A stretch of DNA of 16,266 nt, taken from contig MTSL01000220.1 of the NCBI GenBank assembly GCA_002794465.1, forward strand, positions 13,620 to 29,885, given 5' to 3'. A program made the translations under genes and the position numbers. The notes under the pieces were generated by a model. It did not search any database. It saw only the letters and a list, made by a program, of their open reading frames with translations, and was not told where the DNA came from. The stretch's first letter is position 1, and every line of letters begins with the position of its first letter. Shown piece by piece: positions 2,739 through 10,910 of the stretch. The stretch comes from Paramicrosporidium saccamoebae KSL3 (Eukaryota; Fungi; Cryptomycota).

Positions 2739-4280
2739 ATGACAGTCGAGCAAGTCGAGTCCACCCCTAAAGATGCGTCTGAAGCGCTAAACCTGAACGA
2801 GTCTACCCCTAAGAATGCGTTTGAAACACTAAACCTGAGCGAGCCCACTATGAAGGCGATCAGGGAGCTTGGATTCACCTCCATGACGGAAGTACAGGCA
2901 CGCTGCATCCCGCCCCTCCTTGCTGGGAAGGACGTTCTCGGTGCAGCTCGCACTGGCTCCGGTAAGACGTTGGCCTTTCTCCTGCCCGCCATCGAGCTCC
3001 TCCACCGTCTAAAGTTCAAACCGCGCAACGGGACCGGCGTGGTGATTGTATCGCCGACGAGAGAGTTGGCTTTGCAGATTTTTGGAGTGGCAAAAGAGCT
3101 GCTCAAGTTCCACAGCCAGACTTTTGGGATTGTCATGGGCGGTGCTAACAGAAAGGCAGAGGCGGAAAAGCTGCAGAAGGGTGTCTGTCTGTTGGTTGCC
3201 ACTCCTGGAAGACTGTTGGATCACTTGCAGAATACGCCTGGCTTTGTGGTCAAGCATCTTCGAGCACTGGTTATTGACGAAGCCGATCGTATTCTTGAAG
3301 TTGGATTTGAGGAAGAGATGAAACAGATTATCAACCTGCTTCCCAAGGAAAGACAGACGCTGCTCTTCTCCGCCACCCAGACGACAAAAGTGGAGGATCT
3401 TGCTCGCATTTCCCTAAAACAGGGGCCTATCTATATCAATGTCCATGAGAATCTTGCGGCGGCGACCAACGACAATCTTGAACAGGGCTATGTTGTTTGT
3501 CCCAGTGACCGTCGTTTCTTACTGTTATTTACCTTTTTGAAGAAGAATCTCAACAAAAAGGTGATTGTTTTCTTTTCATCATGCAATGCCGTCAAGTATC
3601 ATGCAGAGTTGCTCAACTACATAGACGTTCCCGTGTTGGATCTGCATGGTAAGCAAAAGCAGAAGAAGAGAACTGCTACATTTTTTGAATTTATGAACGC
3701 CGAGTCGGGAGTTCTTCTTTGTACTGACGTTGCCGCTCGTGGACTTGACATTCCCTCTGTGGATTGGATTGTGCAATACGATCCCACCGACGATCCTCGT
3801 GAGTACATTCATCGTGTGGGTCGTACTGCCCGTGCCGGTGGCCGCGGGCGTGCCCTTCTCTTCCTTCTCCCCTCTGAGCTTGGCTTCCTTCGCTATCTCA
3901 AACAGGCCAAGGTTCCCCTCAACGAGTATGAATTCCCCATTACCAAAATTGCCAATGTCCAGCAACAGCTAGAGAAGCTGATTGAGAAGAATTACTATCT
4001 CAACAAGTCGGCAAAGGAGGCCTACCGGTCCTACTTGCAAGCCTACGCGTCACACTCGCTGAAAAAGATTTTCAACATTAACGAGTTGGATCTGAAAAAG
4101 GTTGCCGGCTCCTTTGGATTTACCGTGCCCCCGAACGTAAACATTACCATCGGGGCCAGCGGACGGTCTGAAAAGAAGGGAAGAAAGCCCACCTCTGCTG
4201 GTTACTCGTCAAAGAAGCAAGATGACAAGCAGCATTACAAAAAGTCCAGTGTCTCTGCGAAAAATGTTCAGTATTCATAG
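2739..4280 (+). CDS. HAS1: DEAD-box RNA helicase Has1/DDX18, intronless, 513 aa
   Basis: Q motif [56 protein letters not shown], and the Has1-type C-terminus [15 protein letters not shown]. First in-frame ATG is 2739; the ORF track uses a GTG at 2688. Confidence 0.96.
2757..2840 (+). repeat. 42-bp in-frame tandem duplication in the HAS1 5' end
   Basis: Units 2757-2798 and 2799-2840 are 35/42 identical and encode [14 protein letters not shown] / [14 protein letters not shown]. Confidence 0.9.
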
Positions 4281-4570: not shown

Positions 4571-4987
4571 ATGGCTCCCACCAAGGTAGCGTCTCCGTAA
4601 CGTGGCCTTAACTTTTAGACTGTCGCCGCCAAGAAGCCCTGCAAGTTTGTCATCGACTGCAGCCGTCCCGTCTCGGATGCCATCTTTGACGCTGCTGCGT
4701 TTGAGAACTTTTTGCATGACCGTTTCAAGGTGAACGGCAAGACTGGCCAGCTCGGCGCCGCTGTGGAGATTACCCGCGACGGTACCGGCCAGCGCATCGT
4801 CGTTGTTGGAAACTCTGTGGACTTTCCCAAGAGATACCTCAAGTATCTGACGAAAAAGTTCCTGAAGAAGAACCAGCTGCGCGATTGGTTGCACGTAGTG
4901 GCTTCTGATAAGCAGACCTACCAGCTGCGCTACTTTAACATTGGACAGGACGAGGAAGAGGGCGAAGATGCTGAAGCCGACAACTAA
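4571..4987 (+). CDS. RPL22: 60S ribosomal protein eL22, 2 exons, 127 aa
   Basis: Exons 4571-4585 and 4619-4987 give [48 protein letters not shown]...[27 protein letters not shown]...YQLRYFNI. Confidence 0.96.
4586..4618 (+). other. Spliceosomal intron, 33 nt (RPL22, phase 0)
   Basis: GTAGCG...CTTAAC-TTTTAG. Confidence 0.88.
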
Positions 4988-5240: not shown

Positions 5241-6855
5241 CTAAAAGGTCGATGTACGCTCCACTGACTGCTGCACATCCAACGTGCCGGCCGTTGAGAC
5301 GGGTTCCAGGGAGCGACGCTCCTGTTTCCGGGACGAATTCCGTACTGCAACGGCCTCTACCTTTGCCCACCTTTGGTCCCGGGTGTTTCCATCGACCATA
5401 TCGCAGGTGGAAGAGATGCGTTCATAGAGTCGCGGATTCATGTCCATGAATAGTCGCAGGCCATTGAACACTTGCAACTGCACGCCCCTACTAGTCAGTA
5501 TACGACACAGTACAATTACTTGTTCCAATGTTCTCGGGAATATTTAAGCATAGCCGGCAGGACGATGGGCATGGCATCCTCGGCATTTTCCGAAACGGCT
5601 CCCACAATATATTCGTTGCTCCAATACTGCAGCGCCCGCTCCGCCACCTGGAAATGCGGACTGCTGATACAGCGGGCAATCTGATGCATCAGTGGCGTCA
5701 GAAACTTGACGAAACGACCCTGTGGGGTGACGTCAAGGACTTCTTCAATTTCATTGAGAAACATGATTTCTTTGGTCGTGTTTGTCTTGGGCCAGAGCCG
5801 GAGCAGTCCCAAGATGATAGGTTCAACAAGGGAACAGTCCTTTTCGGCAAACTGTACAACACACAAGGAAAGTTGTGGAAAGTAGATGGGCAGGCATCGG
5901 TTCTTATGCAGCGGAATGAGTGTTTTCAACAAAAAGATTTTGTGTTCGTCCCGTAGCGGCACGGCAAATCCATTTACTACACTCCCCAATATTTCCAGCA
6001 TCTCGGCAATGTTGTGTCGTTCGTCTTCATAGATAAATTCATAGAAAACGTGTCGCATTGCCTTTCGTATGAATGCACGCAGATTGAGAAACTTTCCATA
6101 TACGCGATGGACGGCCGTCTTGACCATATCCCGCTCTCGTGGATCCTCCAGATCAAACAGCGTCAACAGTCGATATACAAACAGTTGATCTACAAACTTT
6201 CGTGCCATATTCACATTGAATGCATGGGACTCAACTAGTCGGATGAAAATTTCATACACAAGATGCGTATGAGGCCAACTCGAGTCGTAGAGCGGTTCGT
6301 CGTCCTCCGGGTCATATTCATCGCCTATTGGGTTTTGACTCGGTGGAATGGCTCTGAACACGTTTTTGGCAAACATTATAATCACTTCCTGGTACTGCTG
6401 CTCGCCCAGTCCTGCTGTATGTTCGGTAATGACCATGAGAATTTCGTTCAGGGCTGCAGTTTTGAGTTCCTTGTTGCGAATGTCAAAGAGCGGCATGTCA
6501 AAGTCAAATATAAACTCGCACTGCGCAATCTTCTTGGAGAACAGTTTGGGCCATTGTGACTCGGATACATCTACAAGAGGCAGTTAGCAGGAAATGCAGC
6601 CATACCGACAAATTTGGGAAGGGGCTCCATTTCGACAATTTGTCGAGTCAGAAGCAGAGTATGCAGCATCTTCCTTGGTGTTCGTGCGCCTGGCGGCAGC
6701 GCATCCATCTGGTCTGCCCTCAACTTTGCTACATTAGTCTCTGGCTTGGGGGAGGGTGTCTACATGTGTTAGGCGCACAAAAGCTGTACCCGGGCCGGCG
6801 CAGGTGGCGAAGTAGTGGCCTCGGGTTGAGGCGATGCAATTTCGACCTCTGACAT
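5241..6855 (-). CDS. RTS1: PP2A regulatory subunit B'/B56, 4 exons, 505 aa
   Basis: Exons 6855-6790, 6759-6606, 6570-5520 and 5487-5241 (1518 nt). Motifs LFSKKIAQCEFIFDF, EDDEPLYDSSWPH, FDLEDPRERD, HRVYGKF, EILGSVVNGFAVPL, WPKTNTTKE, HFQVAERAL and HWNK..FNGLRLFMDMN. Confidence 0.93.
5488..5519 (-). other. Spliceosomal intron, 32 nt (B56 intron 3, phase 2), tandem TAGTAG acceptor
   Basis: GTAATT...ACTGAC-TAGTAG. Restores HWNK-GVQLQVFNGL. Confidence 0.9.
6571..6605 (-). other. Spliceosomal intron, 35 nt (B56 intron 2, phase 1)
   Basis: GTATGG...GCTAAC-TGCCTCTTGTAG. Restores PLPKFV-D-VSESQWPKLF. Confidence 0.9.
6760..6789 (-). other. Spliceosomal intron, 30 nt (B56 intron 1, phase 0)
   Basis: GTACAG...CCTAAC-ACATGTAG. 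Contains an in-frame TAA. Confidence 0.8.
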
Positions 6856-7124
6856 GAGCGTCTGAATGTCCTTTCCCGCACACTCTAGAGTCTACAAAGG
6901 GGCGGTGTGCCCCCATCCAATTAGATTCATCACAAAGCATGCAGTACCGAATCTCGTCCTTCATTGGCGGCTCCCAACATGTCTTCCGCCCTCACTGCCA
7001 ATAGTATACACCACGTTCGTCTCGAAAATCCAGTCAAAAGCGCCCCGGGTAAAGAGCGCGTTGATGAACGGAGTTTCCGCCAGCAGCCAATCAAAGCCGT
7101 CCGGGCCCTGGCTTAGTACTTGAG

Positions 7125-7133
7125 ACCCTAGGC
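7125..7133 (+). promoter_or_regulatory. ACCCTAGGC motif upstream of RPL27
   Basis: Starts 33 nt upstream of the ATG at 7158, almost the same spacing as in RPL22. A GCCCTGG variant lies about 20 nt further upstream. Confidence 0.4.
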
Positions 7134-7157
7134 AGCCTTCGACTCACTGTACTGAGT

Positions 7158-7694
7158 ATGGCCAAGTTCCTGAAGCCCAACAAGGTCGTATTGGTCCTTA
7201 GCGGCCGTTTCGCCGGCAAGAAGGCCGTCATTGTGAAAAATACGTATCGTTCCTACAACTTTCAGTGTCTCTGAGGATGGATGGACAGGCCGTCCGTGGG
7301 TGGACATCCTGTCCTGAAGCCTTTTCCTTTTCCTATGAGTGCAGTAACTAATGACTATATACATTTCGACGAAGGCGACAAGAGCACCAACAAAAAGTTT
7401 GGCTGTGCCTTGGTTGTTGGCGTTGAGCGTGCCCCGTTGAAGGTCACCAAGGCGATGAGCCAGAAGAAGGTTTCTCGTCGCTCGCGCGTCAAGCCCTTTG
7501 TCAAGGTAATCAACTACAGCCATCTGATGCCCACCCGCTACAACTTTGAGTTGGAGGTCAACACCCCCGTTTCCAGCGAGCTACTGAAGGATCCTTCCAA
7601 GAAGAAGGAGATTCGCGGAGAGCTGAAGAAGGTGATGGAGGACAAGTACAAGACTGGACAGTCCAAGTGGTTCTTCCAAAAGCTGCGTTTCTAA
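7158..7694 (+). CDS. RPL27: 60S ribosomal protein eL27, 2 exons, 137 aa in the preferred model
   Basis: [27 protein letters not shown]...FDEG...[15 protein letters not shown]...[17 protein letters not shown]...KWFFQKLRF. Exons 7158-7239 and 7363-7694 give IVKNFDEG. Gene identity is secure; the splice junction is non-canonical (see findings). Confidence 0.95.
7240..7362 (+). other. Putative 123-nt AT-AC intron in RPL27 (phase 1) with U2-type signals
   Basis: 5' end ATACGT, branch-like ACTAAT at 7347-7352, 3' end TATAC. No AG lies near the required junction, and retention hits TGA at 7272-7274. Confidence 0.65.
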
Positions 7695-7727: not shown

Positions 7728-7739
7728 TGTGTGTGTGTG
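7728..7739 (+). repeat. (TG)6 microsatellite followed by G-rich tracts
   Basis: tgtgtgtgtgtg read directly; G runs continue over 7741-7801. Confidence 0.85.
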
Positions 7740-8061
7740 AGGGGAGGGGGTATAAAGTCGAGATGAGGGTGGGGTGTGTAGAGTTGGGATGAGAGTGAGG
7801 GTGCAAATTACAATGCCAAGCAATAATGATACACTGCCGAGGTTATCCGAGACTGCAATGCCGATATCACAGTGCCGGGACCGCAAAAAGTTTGCTGATG
7901 GGTAAACTTGCCTATTAAAGTATATGGCTTCTTTATAGATGGCCATTCTTAACATAGCCGGACTGGACTATGGGACCGCTATCTGGGTCGGATTCACCAA
8001 TAATAAGTGGATGCTGTTTAACAAATTCTATTATAGAGCTCACTATCAAACAGATTCCAAA

Positions 8062-9610
8062 CTAACAGTTGCGAGCTCTTGGATAAATGGCCTTGATGGT
8101 CGGAAATCGAAGCGACTTTAATCCTCCCCTCGTTTTATTGGAGCTCTCTTGGAAATATCGAACAGTAATCTGCGCACCCACCAGCTGGGTTGGGTCTTTT
8201 GCAAAACTGCGGCGCTCCTCCAGGGAAAATCCGCTGCCCACCCAGACATCAACGCCACCAAAATCAATCTTGACACTCGACACCAAATCCTCCACTACAT
8301 GCTGACCGTCTGAAGCAACCAGCATCCGTTCCAATTTGTAATCCTGGACAACAAATTCGGCTTCGAAAAAGTCTTTAACTTTGACAATGTCTTTCCTACG
8401 GGGATTAGTAGAATGATTGGGCATACGTTCGTTTTCCTACAAATGCGCAATCCCGTCGGATAATGAGCCCCTCCCATCCGCGGGCGCGTTGAATATCTAC
8501 AAAATTTCTAAACTCCAAGGGATCATCCGTCCGGTGCTGCTCCAGAACATGCACCTTTTGGATCCCCTCTGCAGCCGACTTTAGCCTGTGCAGACGTTCT
8601 GAGAGAATGGCGTCCTTCATGTTGGTTTCATCGATCAGATCAAATGCAAAAAAGACGAGTCGGCTAGCGTCAGTTTTTGATTTTTCCTCAAATGGTTTTG
8701 AAAGGACAATGGACAGGGCAGCGCTGAAATTGTCGGCCAGCTGATGTACAGTAGTGTCGGGTGTGCCGTCTTCCAGCACACAAAGCTCTCCATCAATATA
8801 AAAATTCGTCATCTCGGTATTGGCCTTGCGAAGGTTCTTTGCAATCTGTAGCAGATTTTCAGAAATGCGGTGGAGATGGCTGAGAATATTGCCTGCGCGT
8901 GTGTATAGTTTAATTGCGGTACCATCGAAATGAGCCAAACACCTGATTCCGTCCAGCTTTCTCGAAATCAACCAATAGTCATCTTTGGTAGCTTCCAGCT
9001 TTATCGAGGGATGTTGTAAAGGATATCCCAACGCCACGGGAAGCTGCTTGCTTGTCACTGGAAAGCTCCTGGTATTTTTTGATTGGGCCACTGTGACATG
9101 TCTCGCCGACACTGCAGTCCCATCCACCTCAACAGTCTCTGAATCGAGAGCCTTTTGCAGCATCCGTTTTCCCATTCCAATGTTTAGATCGCGATCAAAA
9201 ATATCTAATAAAAGTGCACGATGATCTTCATTTGCAGCAATGAAATTCTGGGCCGCCTCAATGGCGCAATGTCCTCTCAGACCATTCTGGAGCTTCTCCA
9301 ACAAACATGAAAGATCCTCTTCGACAATGGGGACAAGGCCTTTGTTACGATGCGTCAGAATAGAATTTCGAGTCACATATATGGGACCCAAACTGTTGAA
9401 GAAACGCAAAAAGTCATGCAGCTCAGTGTATTGTCGTACGATGGCAATTTTCTCTTTGGCCTTGGTGGTCCGACGCACCTCTACGCTCATTAGACACAGC
9501 CTGGAAAGCAGGTCTTGCTTGGTGCTAAAGAAACGCAAGGTTCGTCGGGTGCCAAAGCGATACAGGGCCGAGAATTCTAATTGGGGAATAATTAGAGAAA
9601 CGCGTAGCAT
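8062..9610 (-). CDS. ATP-dependent DNA ligase, phage T4-like architecture (DBD + adenylation + OB), probable mitochondrial presequence, 2 exons, about 505 aa
   Basis: Exons 9610-8427 and 8395-8062. Motif I SRKLDGIRC (Lys codon 8957-8959), III YIDGEL, IIIa FFAFDL, IV GWEGLIIR, V KRTKDIVKVK (spanning the intron), OB-fold VGSGFS and SLRFP. No BRCT or zinc finger. Start is uncertain: 9610 preferred, 9625 and 9490 also in frame. Confidence 0.88.
8396..8426 (-). other. Spliceosomal intron, 31 nt (ligase, phase 2)
   Basis: GTATGC...TACTAAT-CCCCGTAG. Restores FVGKR-T-KDIVKVKDFFEAE. Confidence 0.92.
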
Positions 9611-9623
9611 TGCGGTCCCCGGC

Positions 9624-10910
9624 ATGGACGTGGCCGTGGAGCTGGTCAGAGTTGTTGCTCGTTCATTGTATGAGGACAAGTACACTGTGCTTCTGGACAT
9701 TTTGCTCCGGGACAAAATGTACCGTGCGTGGTGCAGCTGCTCTAATCTCTATAGAATATCGGACGAAGGCGCGGCTGAGAGGATGCAGCTCATGGTCAAG
9801 GACGTTGGAAAGATAGCGGCAAGGCTGAAGGAAGACCGTCTCATTAAGAGTGAGGTGCGGCTAGAGTCGCGCGGCTTGGATGAACGTCCCTTCAACCGGA
9901 CTTTTTATTACATTGACTTGGCTATCTTTGCCGACGTTGTCAAATATCGACTCCATATGATGCGCAAAACACTGGAGGACCGTGTCAAAAATGATGTCAA
10001 TGAAAAGGGCTATCACTGTGTCCGATGTAATCGAACATATTCAGTAATGGATGTCGGAAAGCTGTTCAATCCGACAACCAATGAATTCCATTGCGAAGTT
10101 TGTTCTGCAGAATTGCAGTCGGTTGACCAGTCCATGCTCAGCGCTGACTCGGGACGACAGTCCAAGCTGATTGAGCAGACAAATCATATTTTGCGTCTGC
10201 TACGGCGGATTGACGAGGTGCAAATTCCGCGTTTTGATCCGATAGAATATTTAAAAGCCAGGGACTCTATCGACCTACAAGTCACATCACCCAAGGACTC
10301 GATCAGCGATGTTCTGTCAACGTCGGGGAAGAGTGTTGAGCTGAGGGTAGCGGGGGCTGATGCAAAGGAAAAGGAGCTTCAGGTTGAAATTCTGTCCACT
10401 AGTGTACCCGAGTCAGAAACCAGACACGAGATGCCGGTGTGGCACACTCACAGTACCGTTACGGGACAGCAAGTTAAAGGCTCTGTCGTCTCCATTGCCT
10501 CTCCTGAATCCATCTCCTCCACATTGGCAGCCTCTAAAGAGACCATGGACTATGTGAAATACTATGAAGCAGCGCAAATGAATCCAATGTCTTTACCAAA
10601 GAAATCTCGAACCGAAATGACAGTACCAGAATCCCCCAAACTTGTACAGACGGGTACACTAAAGAGTTCACCAACAGATGCCAAAATAGCTATGACAACA
10701 GATTTGACAACAAATGTGCCAACAGACGTGACAAAAGACGTGACAACAGACGTGACAAAAGATGCGACAACATCCCTCCAGTCACCAATGGTTTCTGTGC
10801 AAGGTGTACTAAAGCCTCTGAGAAACGTGACTGATGATGACAAGAACAACATGACCGAGGAAGAGTATCACAAATACTACGAAGCATATATGGCTCTAGA
10901 CCTAGAATAA
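9624..10910 (+). CDS. TFA1: General transcription factor TFIIE alpha (large) subunit, 2 exons, 416 aa
   Basis: N-terminal winged helix LVRVVARSLY...YYID...DVVKYRL, zinc ribbon YHCVRC...FHCEVC, and C-terminal motif VSVQGVLKPLRNVTDDDKNNMTEEEY. Exons 9624-9718 and 9755-10910. The ORF track's 128-aa upstream extension is antisense to the ligase. Confidence 0.9.
   Translation: MDVAVELVRVVARSLYEDKYTVLLDILLRDKMYRAWCSCSNLYRISDEGAAERMQLMVKDVGKIAARLKEDRLIKSEVRLESRGLDERPFNRTFYYIDLAIFADVVKYRLHMMRKTLEDRVKNDVNEKGYHCVRCNRTYSVMDVGKLFNPTTNEFHCEVCSAELQSVDQSMLSADSGRQSKLIEQTNHILRLLRRIDEVQIPRFDPIEYLKARDSIDLQVTSPKDSISDVLSTSGKSVELRVAGADAKEKELQVEILSTSVPESETRHEMPVWHTHSTVTGQQVKGSVVSIASPESISSTLAASKETMDYVKYYEAAQMNPMSLPKKSRTEMTVPESPKLVQTGTLKSSPTDAKIAMTTDLTTNVPTDVTKDVTTDVTKDATTSLQSPMVSVQGVLKPLRNVTDDDKNNMTEEEYHKYYEAYMALDLE
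9719..9754 (+). other. Spliceosomal intron, 36 nt, in frame and stop-free (TFA1, phase 2)
   Basis: GTACCG...CTCTAAT-CTCTATAG. Removal converts DKMYRAWCSCSNLYRISDEG to DKIISDEG. Confidence 0.78.
10692..10775 (+). repeat. 12-bp coding minisatellite, about 7 units (consensus GTGACAACAGAC) in the TFA1 linker
   Basis: Encodes MTTD LTTN VPTD VTKD VTTD VTKD ATTS. Confidence 0.88.

Follow-up and report, generated by a model that had tools for sequence, protein, structure and literature searches.

How does the Paramicrosporidium saccamoebae gene for ribosomal protein eL27 give rise to a protein of normal spacing when its frame, translated without splicing, runs into a TGA codon? We addressed this question in a window of 16,266 nucleotides, the whole stretch of P. 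saccamoebae DNA that was analysed, in which the gene and its neighbours are arranged as listed in Table 1. A protein search with eL27 returned 888 matches (best E = 1e-63), all of them carrying the Ribosomal_L27e domain PF01777, which in eL27 accompanies an N-terminal KOW domain, and the similarity extends over the full length of the protein and includes the 21 invariant columns of a 49-sequence alignment. When we aligned the protein with a reference set of 46 full-length eL27 homologues from fungi, animals, a plant and protists, its start, MAKFLKP, fell together with the starts of all 46; sequence comparison further showed that exon 1 is conserved in relatives. Downstream, a GT/GA-rich low-complexity stretch (7729-7800, GTGTGTGTGTGAGGGGAGGGGG...GGGTGGGGTGTGT) lies 3' of the eL27 stop codon and before the convergent ligase gene.

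Table 1. Features of the eL27 locus and verified introns of neighbouring genes (positions are those of the window).
Feature	Positions	Strand	Remarks
eL27 exon 1	7158..7239	+	ATG at 7158 ...GTG AAA A; ends with the first base of the split codon
Predicted AT-AC intron, 123 nt, phase 1 in an Asn codon (A/AT)	7240..7362	+	Sole excision with family spacing; same site and termini in 12 loci
5' splice site core ATACGT (U2-type GTAYGT with G1 changed to A)	7240..7245	+	Lineage conservation
GTATCGTTCC, intron +5 to +14	7244..7253	+	Perfect complement of U6 nt 33-42 (GGAACGAUAC), canonical register
Conserved GGATGGATGG motif (7275-7284) and central hairpin GGACAGG 7283-7289 / CCTGTCC 7308-7314	7275..7314	+	Comparison, folding
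Pyrimidine tract CCTTTTCCTTTTCCT, 5' of the branch site	7320..7334	+	Sequence
Branch site ACTAAT; predicted branch A 7351, 11 nt from the intron end	7347..7352	+	Motif in relatives and local introns
3' splice site TAC	7360..7362	+	-1 C and -2 A in 10/10 lineages; -3 pyrimidine in 10/10
eL27 exon 2	7363..7694	+	AT completes Asn; AT TTC GAC GAA GGC...WFFQKLRF; stop TAA 7692-7694; PF01777
Verified intron, eL22	4586..4618		33 nt
Verified intron, B56	6571..6605	-	35 nt
Verified intron, ligase	8396..8426	-	31 nt

A preliminary description of this DNA had proposed that the two eL27 exons are separated by a natural intron that begins with AT and ends with AC. We enumerated all in-frame, stop-free pairs of donors and acceptors, covering GT-AG, GC-AG, AT-AC and several other terminal pairs, and found that only the AT/AC pair 7240/7362 yields KNFDEG without an insertion or a deletion. 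The intron so defined starts ATACGTATCG and ends ACTAATGACTATATAC, and its excision joins ...IVKN to FDEG... with the predicted junction GTGAAAA/ATTTCGAC. An insert between the N and the following F or Y occurs in none of the 46 homologues and is seen only in two alternative models of the P. saccamoebae gene itself. The earlier statement that no AG acceptor lies near the junction holds for the interval from 7345 to 7372; the nearest AG dinucleotides are found at 7343-7344 and 7338-7339 upstream and at 7373-7374 downstream.

The protein search also returned environmental relatives at 57-97% identity, and many of the environmental matches are exon-2 open reading frames that extend backwards into the intron, ending ...H/FD[ED]G. 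From the contigs of the relatives and a metagenome scan we obtained a comparative set of 12 loci with both exons, which represent 10 independent uncultured lineages and come from many projects. The spliced eL27 proteins of these loci are 68-99% identical to that of the window, and most of the loci share the gene order B56, eL27 and then DNA ligase or Trm5. The introns measure 123-307 nt and have interiors that cannot be aligned; the intron nevertheless sits at the same point in all 12 loci, with termini AT and AC throughout. Its 5' end is ATACGTATCG except in two loci, L016 (ATACGTGTCG) and L019 (ATATGAATCG), with the shared pattern ATA[CT]G.ATCG, and its 3' end is YAC in every locus. Across the loci the joined product always reads GKKAVIVK[N/S/T]F[D/E]. 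The split codon varies with the start of exon 2, with A/AT or A/AC encoding Asn, A/GT encoding Ser (L012) and A/CC encoding Thr (L019); Ser and Thr are also found at this position in intronless homologues (P0003 and P0047).

Because AT follows both window junctions, excision of 7241-7363 (TA...CA) or of 7242-7364 (AC...AT) would yield an mRNA identical to that from 7240-7362. Both shifts are ruled out by L012 and L019, whose second exons begin GT and CC, respectively: these differences in the first bases exclude a slide of the boundary by one or two bases, and only AT...AC is common to all loci. The RPL27 introns of related taxa, to which the preliminary description had pointed as a check, therefore run from AT to AC at the same point in 12 loci and 10 lineages, and together with the unique family spacing they bear out its prediction of a natural AT-AC intron at exactly 7240-7362. 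Judged by these comparisons, the eL27 gene of P. saccamoebae, a parasite of amoebae, almost certainly contains a rare intron with AT at its start and AC at its end.

No GT-AG or GC-AG scheme fits across all lineages, and the canonical alternatives differ from one lineage to another. An in-frame canonical option is missing altogether in L015 and L016. L005 and L008 lack an AG in the final 60 nt of the intron; in L009 and L012, splicing from the GT at +5 to any AG loses the frame or meets a stop; and in L019 positions +5/+6 are GA rather than GT. In one canonical alternative the main event would run from GT 7244 to AG 7339, removing 96 nt and inserting nine residues (TAVTNDYIH), with the AT-AC termini a coincidence; the preliminary description had itself named this route as one that could overturn its reading. 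Such splicing would use canonical dinucleotides, be in frame and stop-free, and have the pyrimidine tract directly before AG 7339; its frame is kept in L001-L004, and L006 and L017 offer analogous in-frame options. However, none of the 46 homologues has the insert, the path is either missing or frame-breaking in L005, L008, L009, L012, L015 and L016 and impossible in L019, and the share of lineages in which it is in frame, about one third (3/10), is that expected by chance. The donor at GT 7244 would be GTATCG, with C at +5 and G at +6, unlike those of the verified local introns (GTATGC, GTATGG and GTAGCG). Moreover, this route leaves unexplained the conserved ATAC at +1 to +4, the terminal AC and the register of pairing to U6 described below. 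Weakened by its lineage-limited occurrence and by the homologues, it is in our view very unlikely.

Two of the loci deserve separate mention. In L006 (2885-2895) and L017 (1095-1105), a TAG precedes the terminal AC by 5 nt, and splicing from the GT at +5 to this TAG gives an in-frame insert of three residues, TLH in L006 and TSH in L017. From their sequences, overlapping alternative AT-AC and GT-AG splicing is possible in these two loci, and a minor canonical isoform with an insert of 3-9 residues is likewise possible in the window clade, L006 and L017.

As for the class of the AT-AC intron, the preliminary description had assigned it major-spliceosome (U2-type) signals, and our comparison agrees. 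The termini are AT-AC in 10/10 lineages, the donor ATACGT is of the major type except at +1, and the branch site ACTAAT is of the CTRAY type and resembles those of the local GT-AG introns (ACTAATC, GCTAACT and CTTAACT, located 7-13 nt from YAG). A yCTAATg or TTAATG motif is found 11-17 nt from the 3' end (21 nt in L005) in eight of the 10 lineages; L015 has only TTTAAC, 24 nt from the 3' end, and L016 is without a clear branch site. The remark that the intron is about four times longer than the others here is also correct, given its 123 nt and the 31, 33 and 35 nt of the verified local introns. By these features the intron, conserved within its clade, appears to belong to the rare U2-type AT-AC introns and to add both a host group and a gene to those known to harbour them. 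Elsewhere in the window, the TFIIE-alpha gene contains a candidate 31-nt intron (9724-9754, GTGCGT...CTCTAATCTCTATAG) that breaks the frame; a 36-nt version (9719-9754) from GTACCG, five bases upstream, keeps the frame (...LRDK-I-ISDEG...), and the TFIIE-alpha open reading frame is also open when unspliced.

Conservation of the donor extends well past its core. Among the 10 lineages, +1 A, +2 T, +3 A and +5 G are found in all and +4 C and +6 T in nine, and each position from +1 to +14 is conserved in 7-10 lineages, with background values (3-6/10) from +15 onwards. The conservation past +8 is inexplicable by U1. As RNA, +5 to +14 reads GUAUCGUUCC, of which +7 to +14 is ATCGTTCC, and all 10 positions pair with nt 33-42 of human U6, our reference (PMC5467268), with the host U6, which may differ, taken as conserved in this stretch. 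With the same human reference, 9-10 of the 10 positions pair in 11 of the 12 loci when G-U pairs are counted. In this register, +5 G pairs with C42 and +6 U with A41, as expected for cleavage at A+1 (A7240) and not at GT 7244. The stretch of U6 from nt 33 to 42 is conserved in animals. It is also conserved in plants and in S. pombe, whose U6 contains the AACGAUAC stretch; the U6 of budding yeast differs at one of these positions.

The chance of at least nine matches for one pre-specified 10-mer at one position is about 3e-5, with a handful of snRNA segments compared. A 10-mer with at most one mismatch is expected 0.36-0.73 times by chance in 16 kb, so that the 10-mer alone is not improbable and its significance derives from its position and its conservation. 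The U6-type extension at +9 to +14 is absent from the verified local GT-AG introns. Positions +5 to +8, GUAU, are compatible with U1. On the strength of this complementarity, an exceptionally extended match to U6 snRNA seems to anchor the eL27 intron. The preliminary description had called the intron deliberately weak and regulated, a view not supported here: the conserved 10-nt U6 complement, the U1-compatible GUAU, the consensus branch site, the lack of a competing AG before the AC and the deep retention of the intron all speak against deliberate weakness. Rather than weak, the intron looks reinforced, and we infer that the extension from +5 to +14 may compensate for A+1 and C+4. A further-reaching proposal, for which we see the balance as even, is that the donor is defined mainly by U6, and not by U1 or a GT, with a clade-conserved 10-bp helix between +5 to +14 and U6 33-42 that sets the cleavage site and lets the major spliceosome tolerate A+1 together with a 3' C in the long term.

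A U12-type AT-AC intron would be expected to look different at both ends. According to this alternative, the signals would have drifted along with lineage-specific U11, U12 and U6atac, and one would expect a U6atac or U11 complementary to AUACGUAUCG. The AT-AC termini, the rigidly conserved and extended 5' splice site, a branch site that stays close to the 3' end, at a rather constant 11-17 nt, and the lack of a pyrimidine tract between the two would all suit it. Yet the U12 signatures are lacking at the donor and at the branch site, as had been claimed from the window alone. ATACGTATCG agrees with the U12 donor ATATCCTT only at +1 to +3 and +8; positions +4 to +7 are CGTA where [AG]TATCCTT has TCCT, and this is conserved in 9/10 lineages. 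At the branch site the distance fits (11 nt; norm 10-15), but the sequence, AACTAATG, does not match the U12 consensus TCCTTAAC: its motif is CTAAT, the same as in the neighbouring GT-AG introns, and a TCCTTAAC-like motif is found in none of the 10 lineages. Furthermore, the extended site perfectly complements major U6, with human U6 as the reference. An Rfam search found no snRNA genes in the 16-kb window. We found no statement on minor splicing in Paramicrosporidium in the literature, and the species is absent from the supplement of the pan-eukaryotic survey. Microsporidia have been reported to be without minor splicing. A U12-type intron is thus, in our assessment, very unlikely.

The public annotation takes yet another path. 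The deposited protein PJF16449.1 ("60S ribosomal protein L27 [Paramicrosporidium saccamoebae]", 243 aa) equals the window residue for residue except in its splice model, which removes 45 nt from GT 7244 to AG 7288 and leaves a 28-residue insert between KN and FDEG. It also carries an N-terminal extension of 80 residues (MQPYRQIW...LRLTVLS) that corresponds to an upstream open reading frame joined on (6866-7157); none of the 46 homologues has this extension, and all begin at the Met equivalent to that of MAKFLKP (7158). The P. saccamoebae genome was annotated with MAKER and RNA-seq, and introns are not mentioned in the genome paper (Quandt et al., 2017, PMC5701793). Apart from its status as the public annotation, the deposited model has in its favour that it is in frame and that its intron length is near the local norm. 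By contrast, neither the insert nor the extension is present in any homologue, and the sequence of the insert is conserved in no other lineage. In addition, L001-L004, which are 93-94% identical to the window, differ from it by a 1-nt indel in the region of the tract at 7320-7334, indicating that this stretch is not coding; the indel lies inside the supposed coding insert, and the path is out of frame in these loci. We attach next to no weight to the deposited splice and start, and the public eL27 model of P. saccamoebae is wrong in both its insert and its N-terminal extension, as had been anticipated in the earlier claim that gene predictors would miss the AT-AC intron. Exact look-ups in a collection of 15 billion proteins found neither the AT-AC product nor the GT-AG product nor two read-through open reading frames, so that the collection holds no cDNA-derived protein for either product; L018, on the P0002 contig, which we inspected as a possible cDNA, is without informative flanks. 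An assembly or sequencing error, with a canonical ...CAG acceptor or GT donor masked by a lost base, has nothing to recommend it but the rarity of AT-AC introns and has a negligible probability, given that ATACGTATCG...YAC recurs in more than 10 independent assemblies from different projects, which also excludes the missed G raised in the preliminary description.

Taking the explanation as a whole, it is probable that the major (U2-dependent) spliceosome excises a single AT-AC intron at 7240-7362, leaving a message for a normal eL27 of 136 residues. In the mechanism that we propose, A+1 would pair with the final C, an A/C combination known to stand in for the G/G contact of the first and last intron bases. 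A+1 and C+4 would weaken recognition by U1 and by the core of U6, and we propose that the donor is for this reason reinforced in two ways. The minor reinforcement would be the U1-compatible GUAU at +5 to +8, and the main one a continuous 10-bp helix of GUAUCGUUCC with U6 nt 33-42, 5' of and overlapping the ACAGAGA box, for which the host U6 would have to read ...GGAACGAUACAGAGA... or be a variant that pairs with GUAUCGUUCC. Its canonical register, with +5 G on C42 and +6 U on A41, would fix cleavage at A7240, four bases upstream of GT 7244. The second step would then be directed by ACUAAU (A7351) and by the lack of any AG before the AC at 7362. Finally, a central hairpin on the GGAUGGAUGG arm would probably shorten the effective length of an intron that is 3.5-4 times the usual 31-35 nt.

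This last suggestion derives from the interior of the intron. A GGATGGATGG motif or a (GGAT)n variant is located about 35-70 nt into the intron in most lineages, with ATCC-rich complements downstream; it is present inside the otherwise unalignable introns of L005, L006, L008, L009, L012, L016 and L017 and forms the 5' arm of the central stem in every fold. TGGA is repeated seven times in L008, and runs of CCATCCATCC are found in L015 and L016. The GGAT motif could be a structural zipper, a protein-binding site or an inverted repeat derived from a microsatellite. Stability of the whole intron, which we considered as a conserved property, was not upheld: compared with shuffled sequences, folding gave z = -3.9 for L006 and -3.8 for L009, whereas the window (-0.18) and L017 (-0.63) were no better than shuffled. 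By these fold predictions, and as a suggestion only, the central stem may bring donor and branch site effectively closer together in a genome accustomed to introns of about 30 nt. Rfam searches at the gathering threshold in the window and 14 relative loci, and at E <= 1 on 7100-7450, detected no known RNA (snoRNA, snRNA or other) in the intron. At the 5' end of the intron, ATACGTAT (7240-7247) forms a perfect palindrome; GTATAC or TATAC stands at most 3' ends (7357-7362 in the window). By sequence, AUAC at one end of the intron could pair with GUAU at the other; this end-to-end complementarity is not conserved in L006, L015 and L016 and may arise from the splice signals themselves.

The distribution of the intron suggests that it has been lost more than once. 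The locus L040, on a 175-kb genomic contig, has the order B56, eL27 and Trm5 as in the intron-bearing L005, with which it groups in a neighbour-joining tree, and its eL27 gene (3001-3501) is uninterrupted, reading GTA AAG AAC TTT GAT. This looks like a precise intron loss, AAG AAC TTT GAT being the trace expected from reverse-transcript-mediated loss of an intron spliced at KN/FD. Close relatives on long contigs that have the same synteny and are without the intron comprise L040 and the P0004, P0013 and P0006 contigs. Their sequences point to repeated precise loss within the clade. In a tree of the 136 residues, which is weak evidence, intron-bearing and intronless lineages are interleaved, a pattern that suggests a single early gain or retention and several later losses. 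The intron would be old: ten lineages of the Paramicrosporidium-like clade have it, and several others would have lost it precisely. The eL27 gene of Rozella allomycis (L038) does not have the AT-AC intron and has only a 28-nt GT-AG intron near its 3' end. In distant metagenomic eL27 genes of other eukaryotes (L027-L037), an ordinary intron lies before the P of PYDEG or PHDEG, apparently one base off; it is possible that this site is the old position with a 1-nt shift.

U2-type AT-AC introns number 15 in human, six in mouse and three in fly; worm and Arabidopsis have none, and the fungal cases cited, in xylanase genes, are hypothetical (PMC1557818). Those of human SCN4A/SCN5A and TAF2 (Wu and Krainer, 1997; Sheth et al., 2006, PMC1557818) likewise combine AT-AC termini with a major-type donor and branch site, are conserved between orthologues and are extremely rare. 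In contrast to these human type II introns, the present one belongs to a rozellid, a fungus-like parasite, and interrupts a gene for a ribosomal protein, and we note for it a continuous 10-nt U6 complement, whereas the human introns have been compared by termini and type of site only. In the yeast ACT1 double mutant G1A + G303C (Parker and Siliciano, 1993), as far as it is described in PMC1557818, an A in first and a C in last position restore the contact between the terminal bases for the second step. The eL27 intron resembles this mutant in its terminal A and C and in its predicted use of the major spliceosome; the mutant, in that account, is engineered and inefficient, whereas the eL27 intron is natural, retained and apparently provided with extra reinforcement.

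Extended pairing of U6 with the donor has precedents. In the cryo-EM structure 6AHD, U6 is aligned with the MINX donor up to +17, with extended pairing, and in human STAT3 exon 21 a weak downstream donor prefers CGTTCC at +9 to +14, which pairs with U6 33-38; mutations at +9 to +14 were rescued by compensatory changes at U6 33-35 (PMC11162779). The window has CGTTCC at exactly +9 to +14. While the STAT3 site has its core pairing in a shifted register and a GT donor, the helix predicted for the eL27 intron is continuous from +5 to +14, lies in the canonical register, sits on an AT donor and is conserved in a clade. U12-type AT-AC introns are similar in their termini, in a long, rigid donor helix with a U6-class snRNA and in a short distance from branch site to 3' end; they differ in ATATCCTT and TCCTTAAC, which are not found here, and the complementarity in our case is to U6 and not to U6atac. 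In Microsporidia, the long introns of the genes for poly(A)-binding protein and S23 (Whelan et al., 2018, PMC6349667) offer another parallel, since there, too, a single much longer intron has persisted in several taxa, in a reduced genome whose introns otherwise measure about 25-35 nt, with an internal conserved region or stem-loop and hyper-extended snRNA pairing. Those introns differ from that of eL27 in being GT-AG, in pairing between branch site and U2, and in residing in other genes, eL27 being outside the scope of that paper.

Ribosomal proteins of P. saccamoebae serve as phylogenomic markers for the transition between Rozellomycota and Microsporidia, and the error in the eL27 model matters for this reason; pipelines limited to GT/GC-AG will repeat it in every related genome. 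Few classes of intron are as rare as natural U2-type AT-AC introns, and here ten natural "replicates" reveal which positions are fixed: +1 to +14, the branch site and YAC. Evidence for a role of extended pairing between U6 and the 5' splice site came until now from a single cryo-EM substrate and a single human minigene study; the in-register complement to U6 33-42 would provide independent evolutionary support for such a function and suggests how a non-GT donor may become reliable. The eL27 intron also presents repeated precise loss beside long-term retention in a reducing genome. If the donor is indeed defined mainly by U6, splice-site recognition of a U12-like kind would have evolved inside the major spliceosome of a lineage heading towards microsporidian-style reduction.
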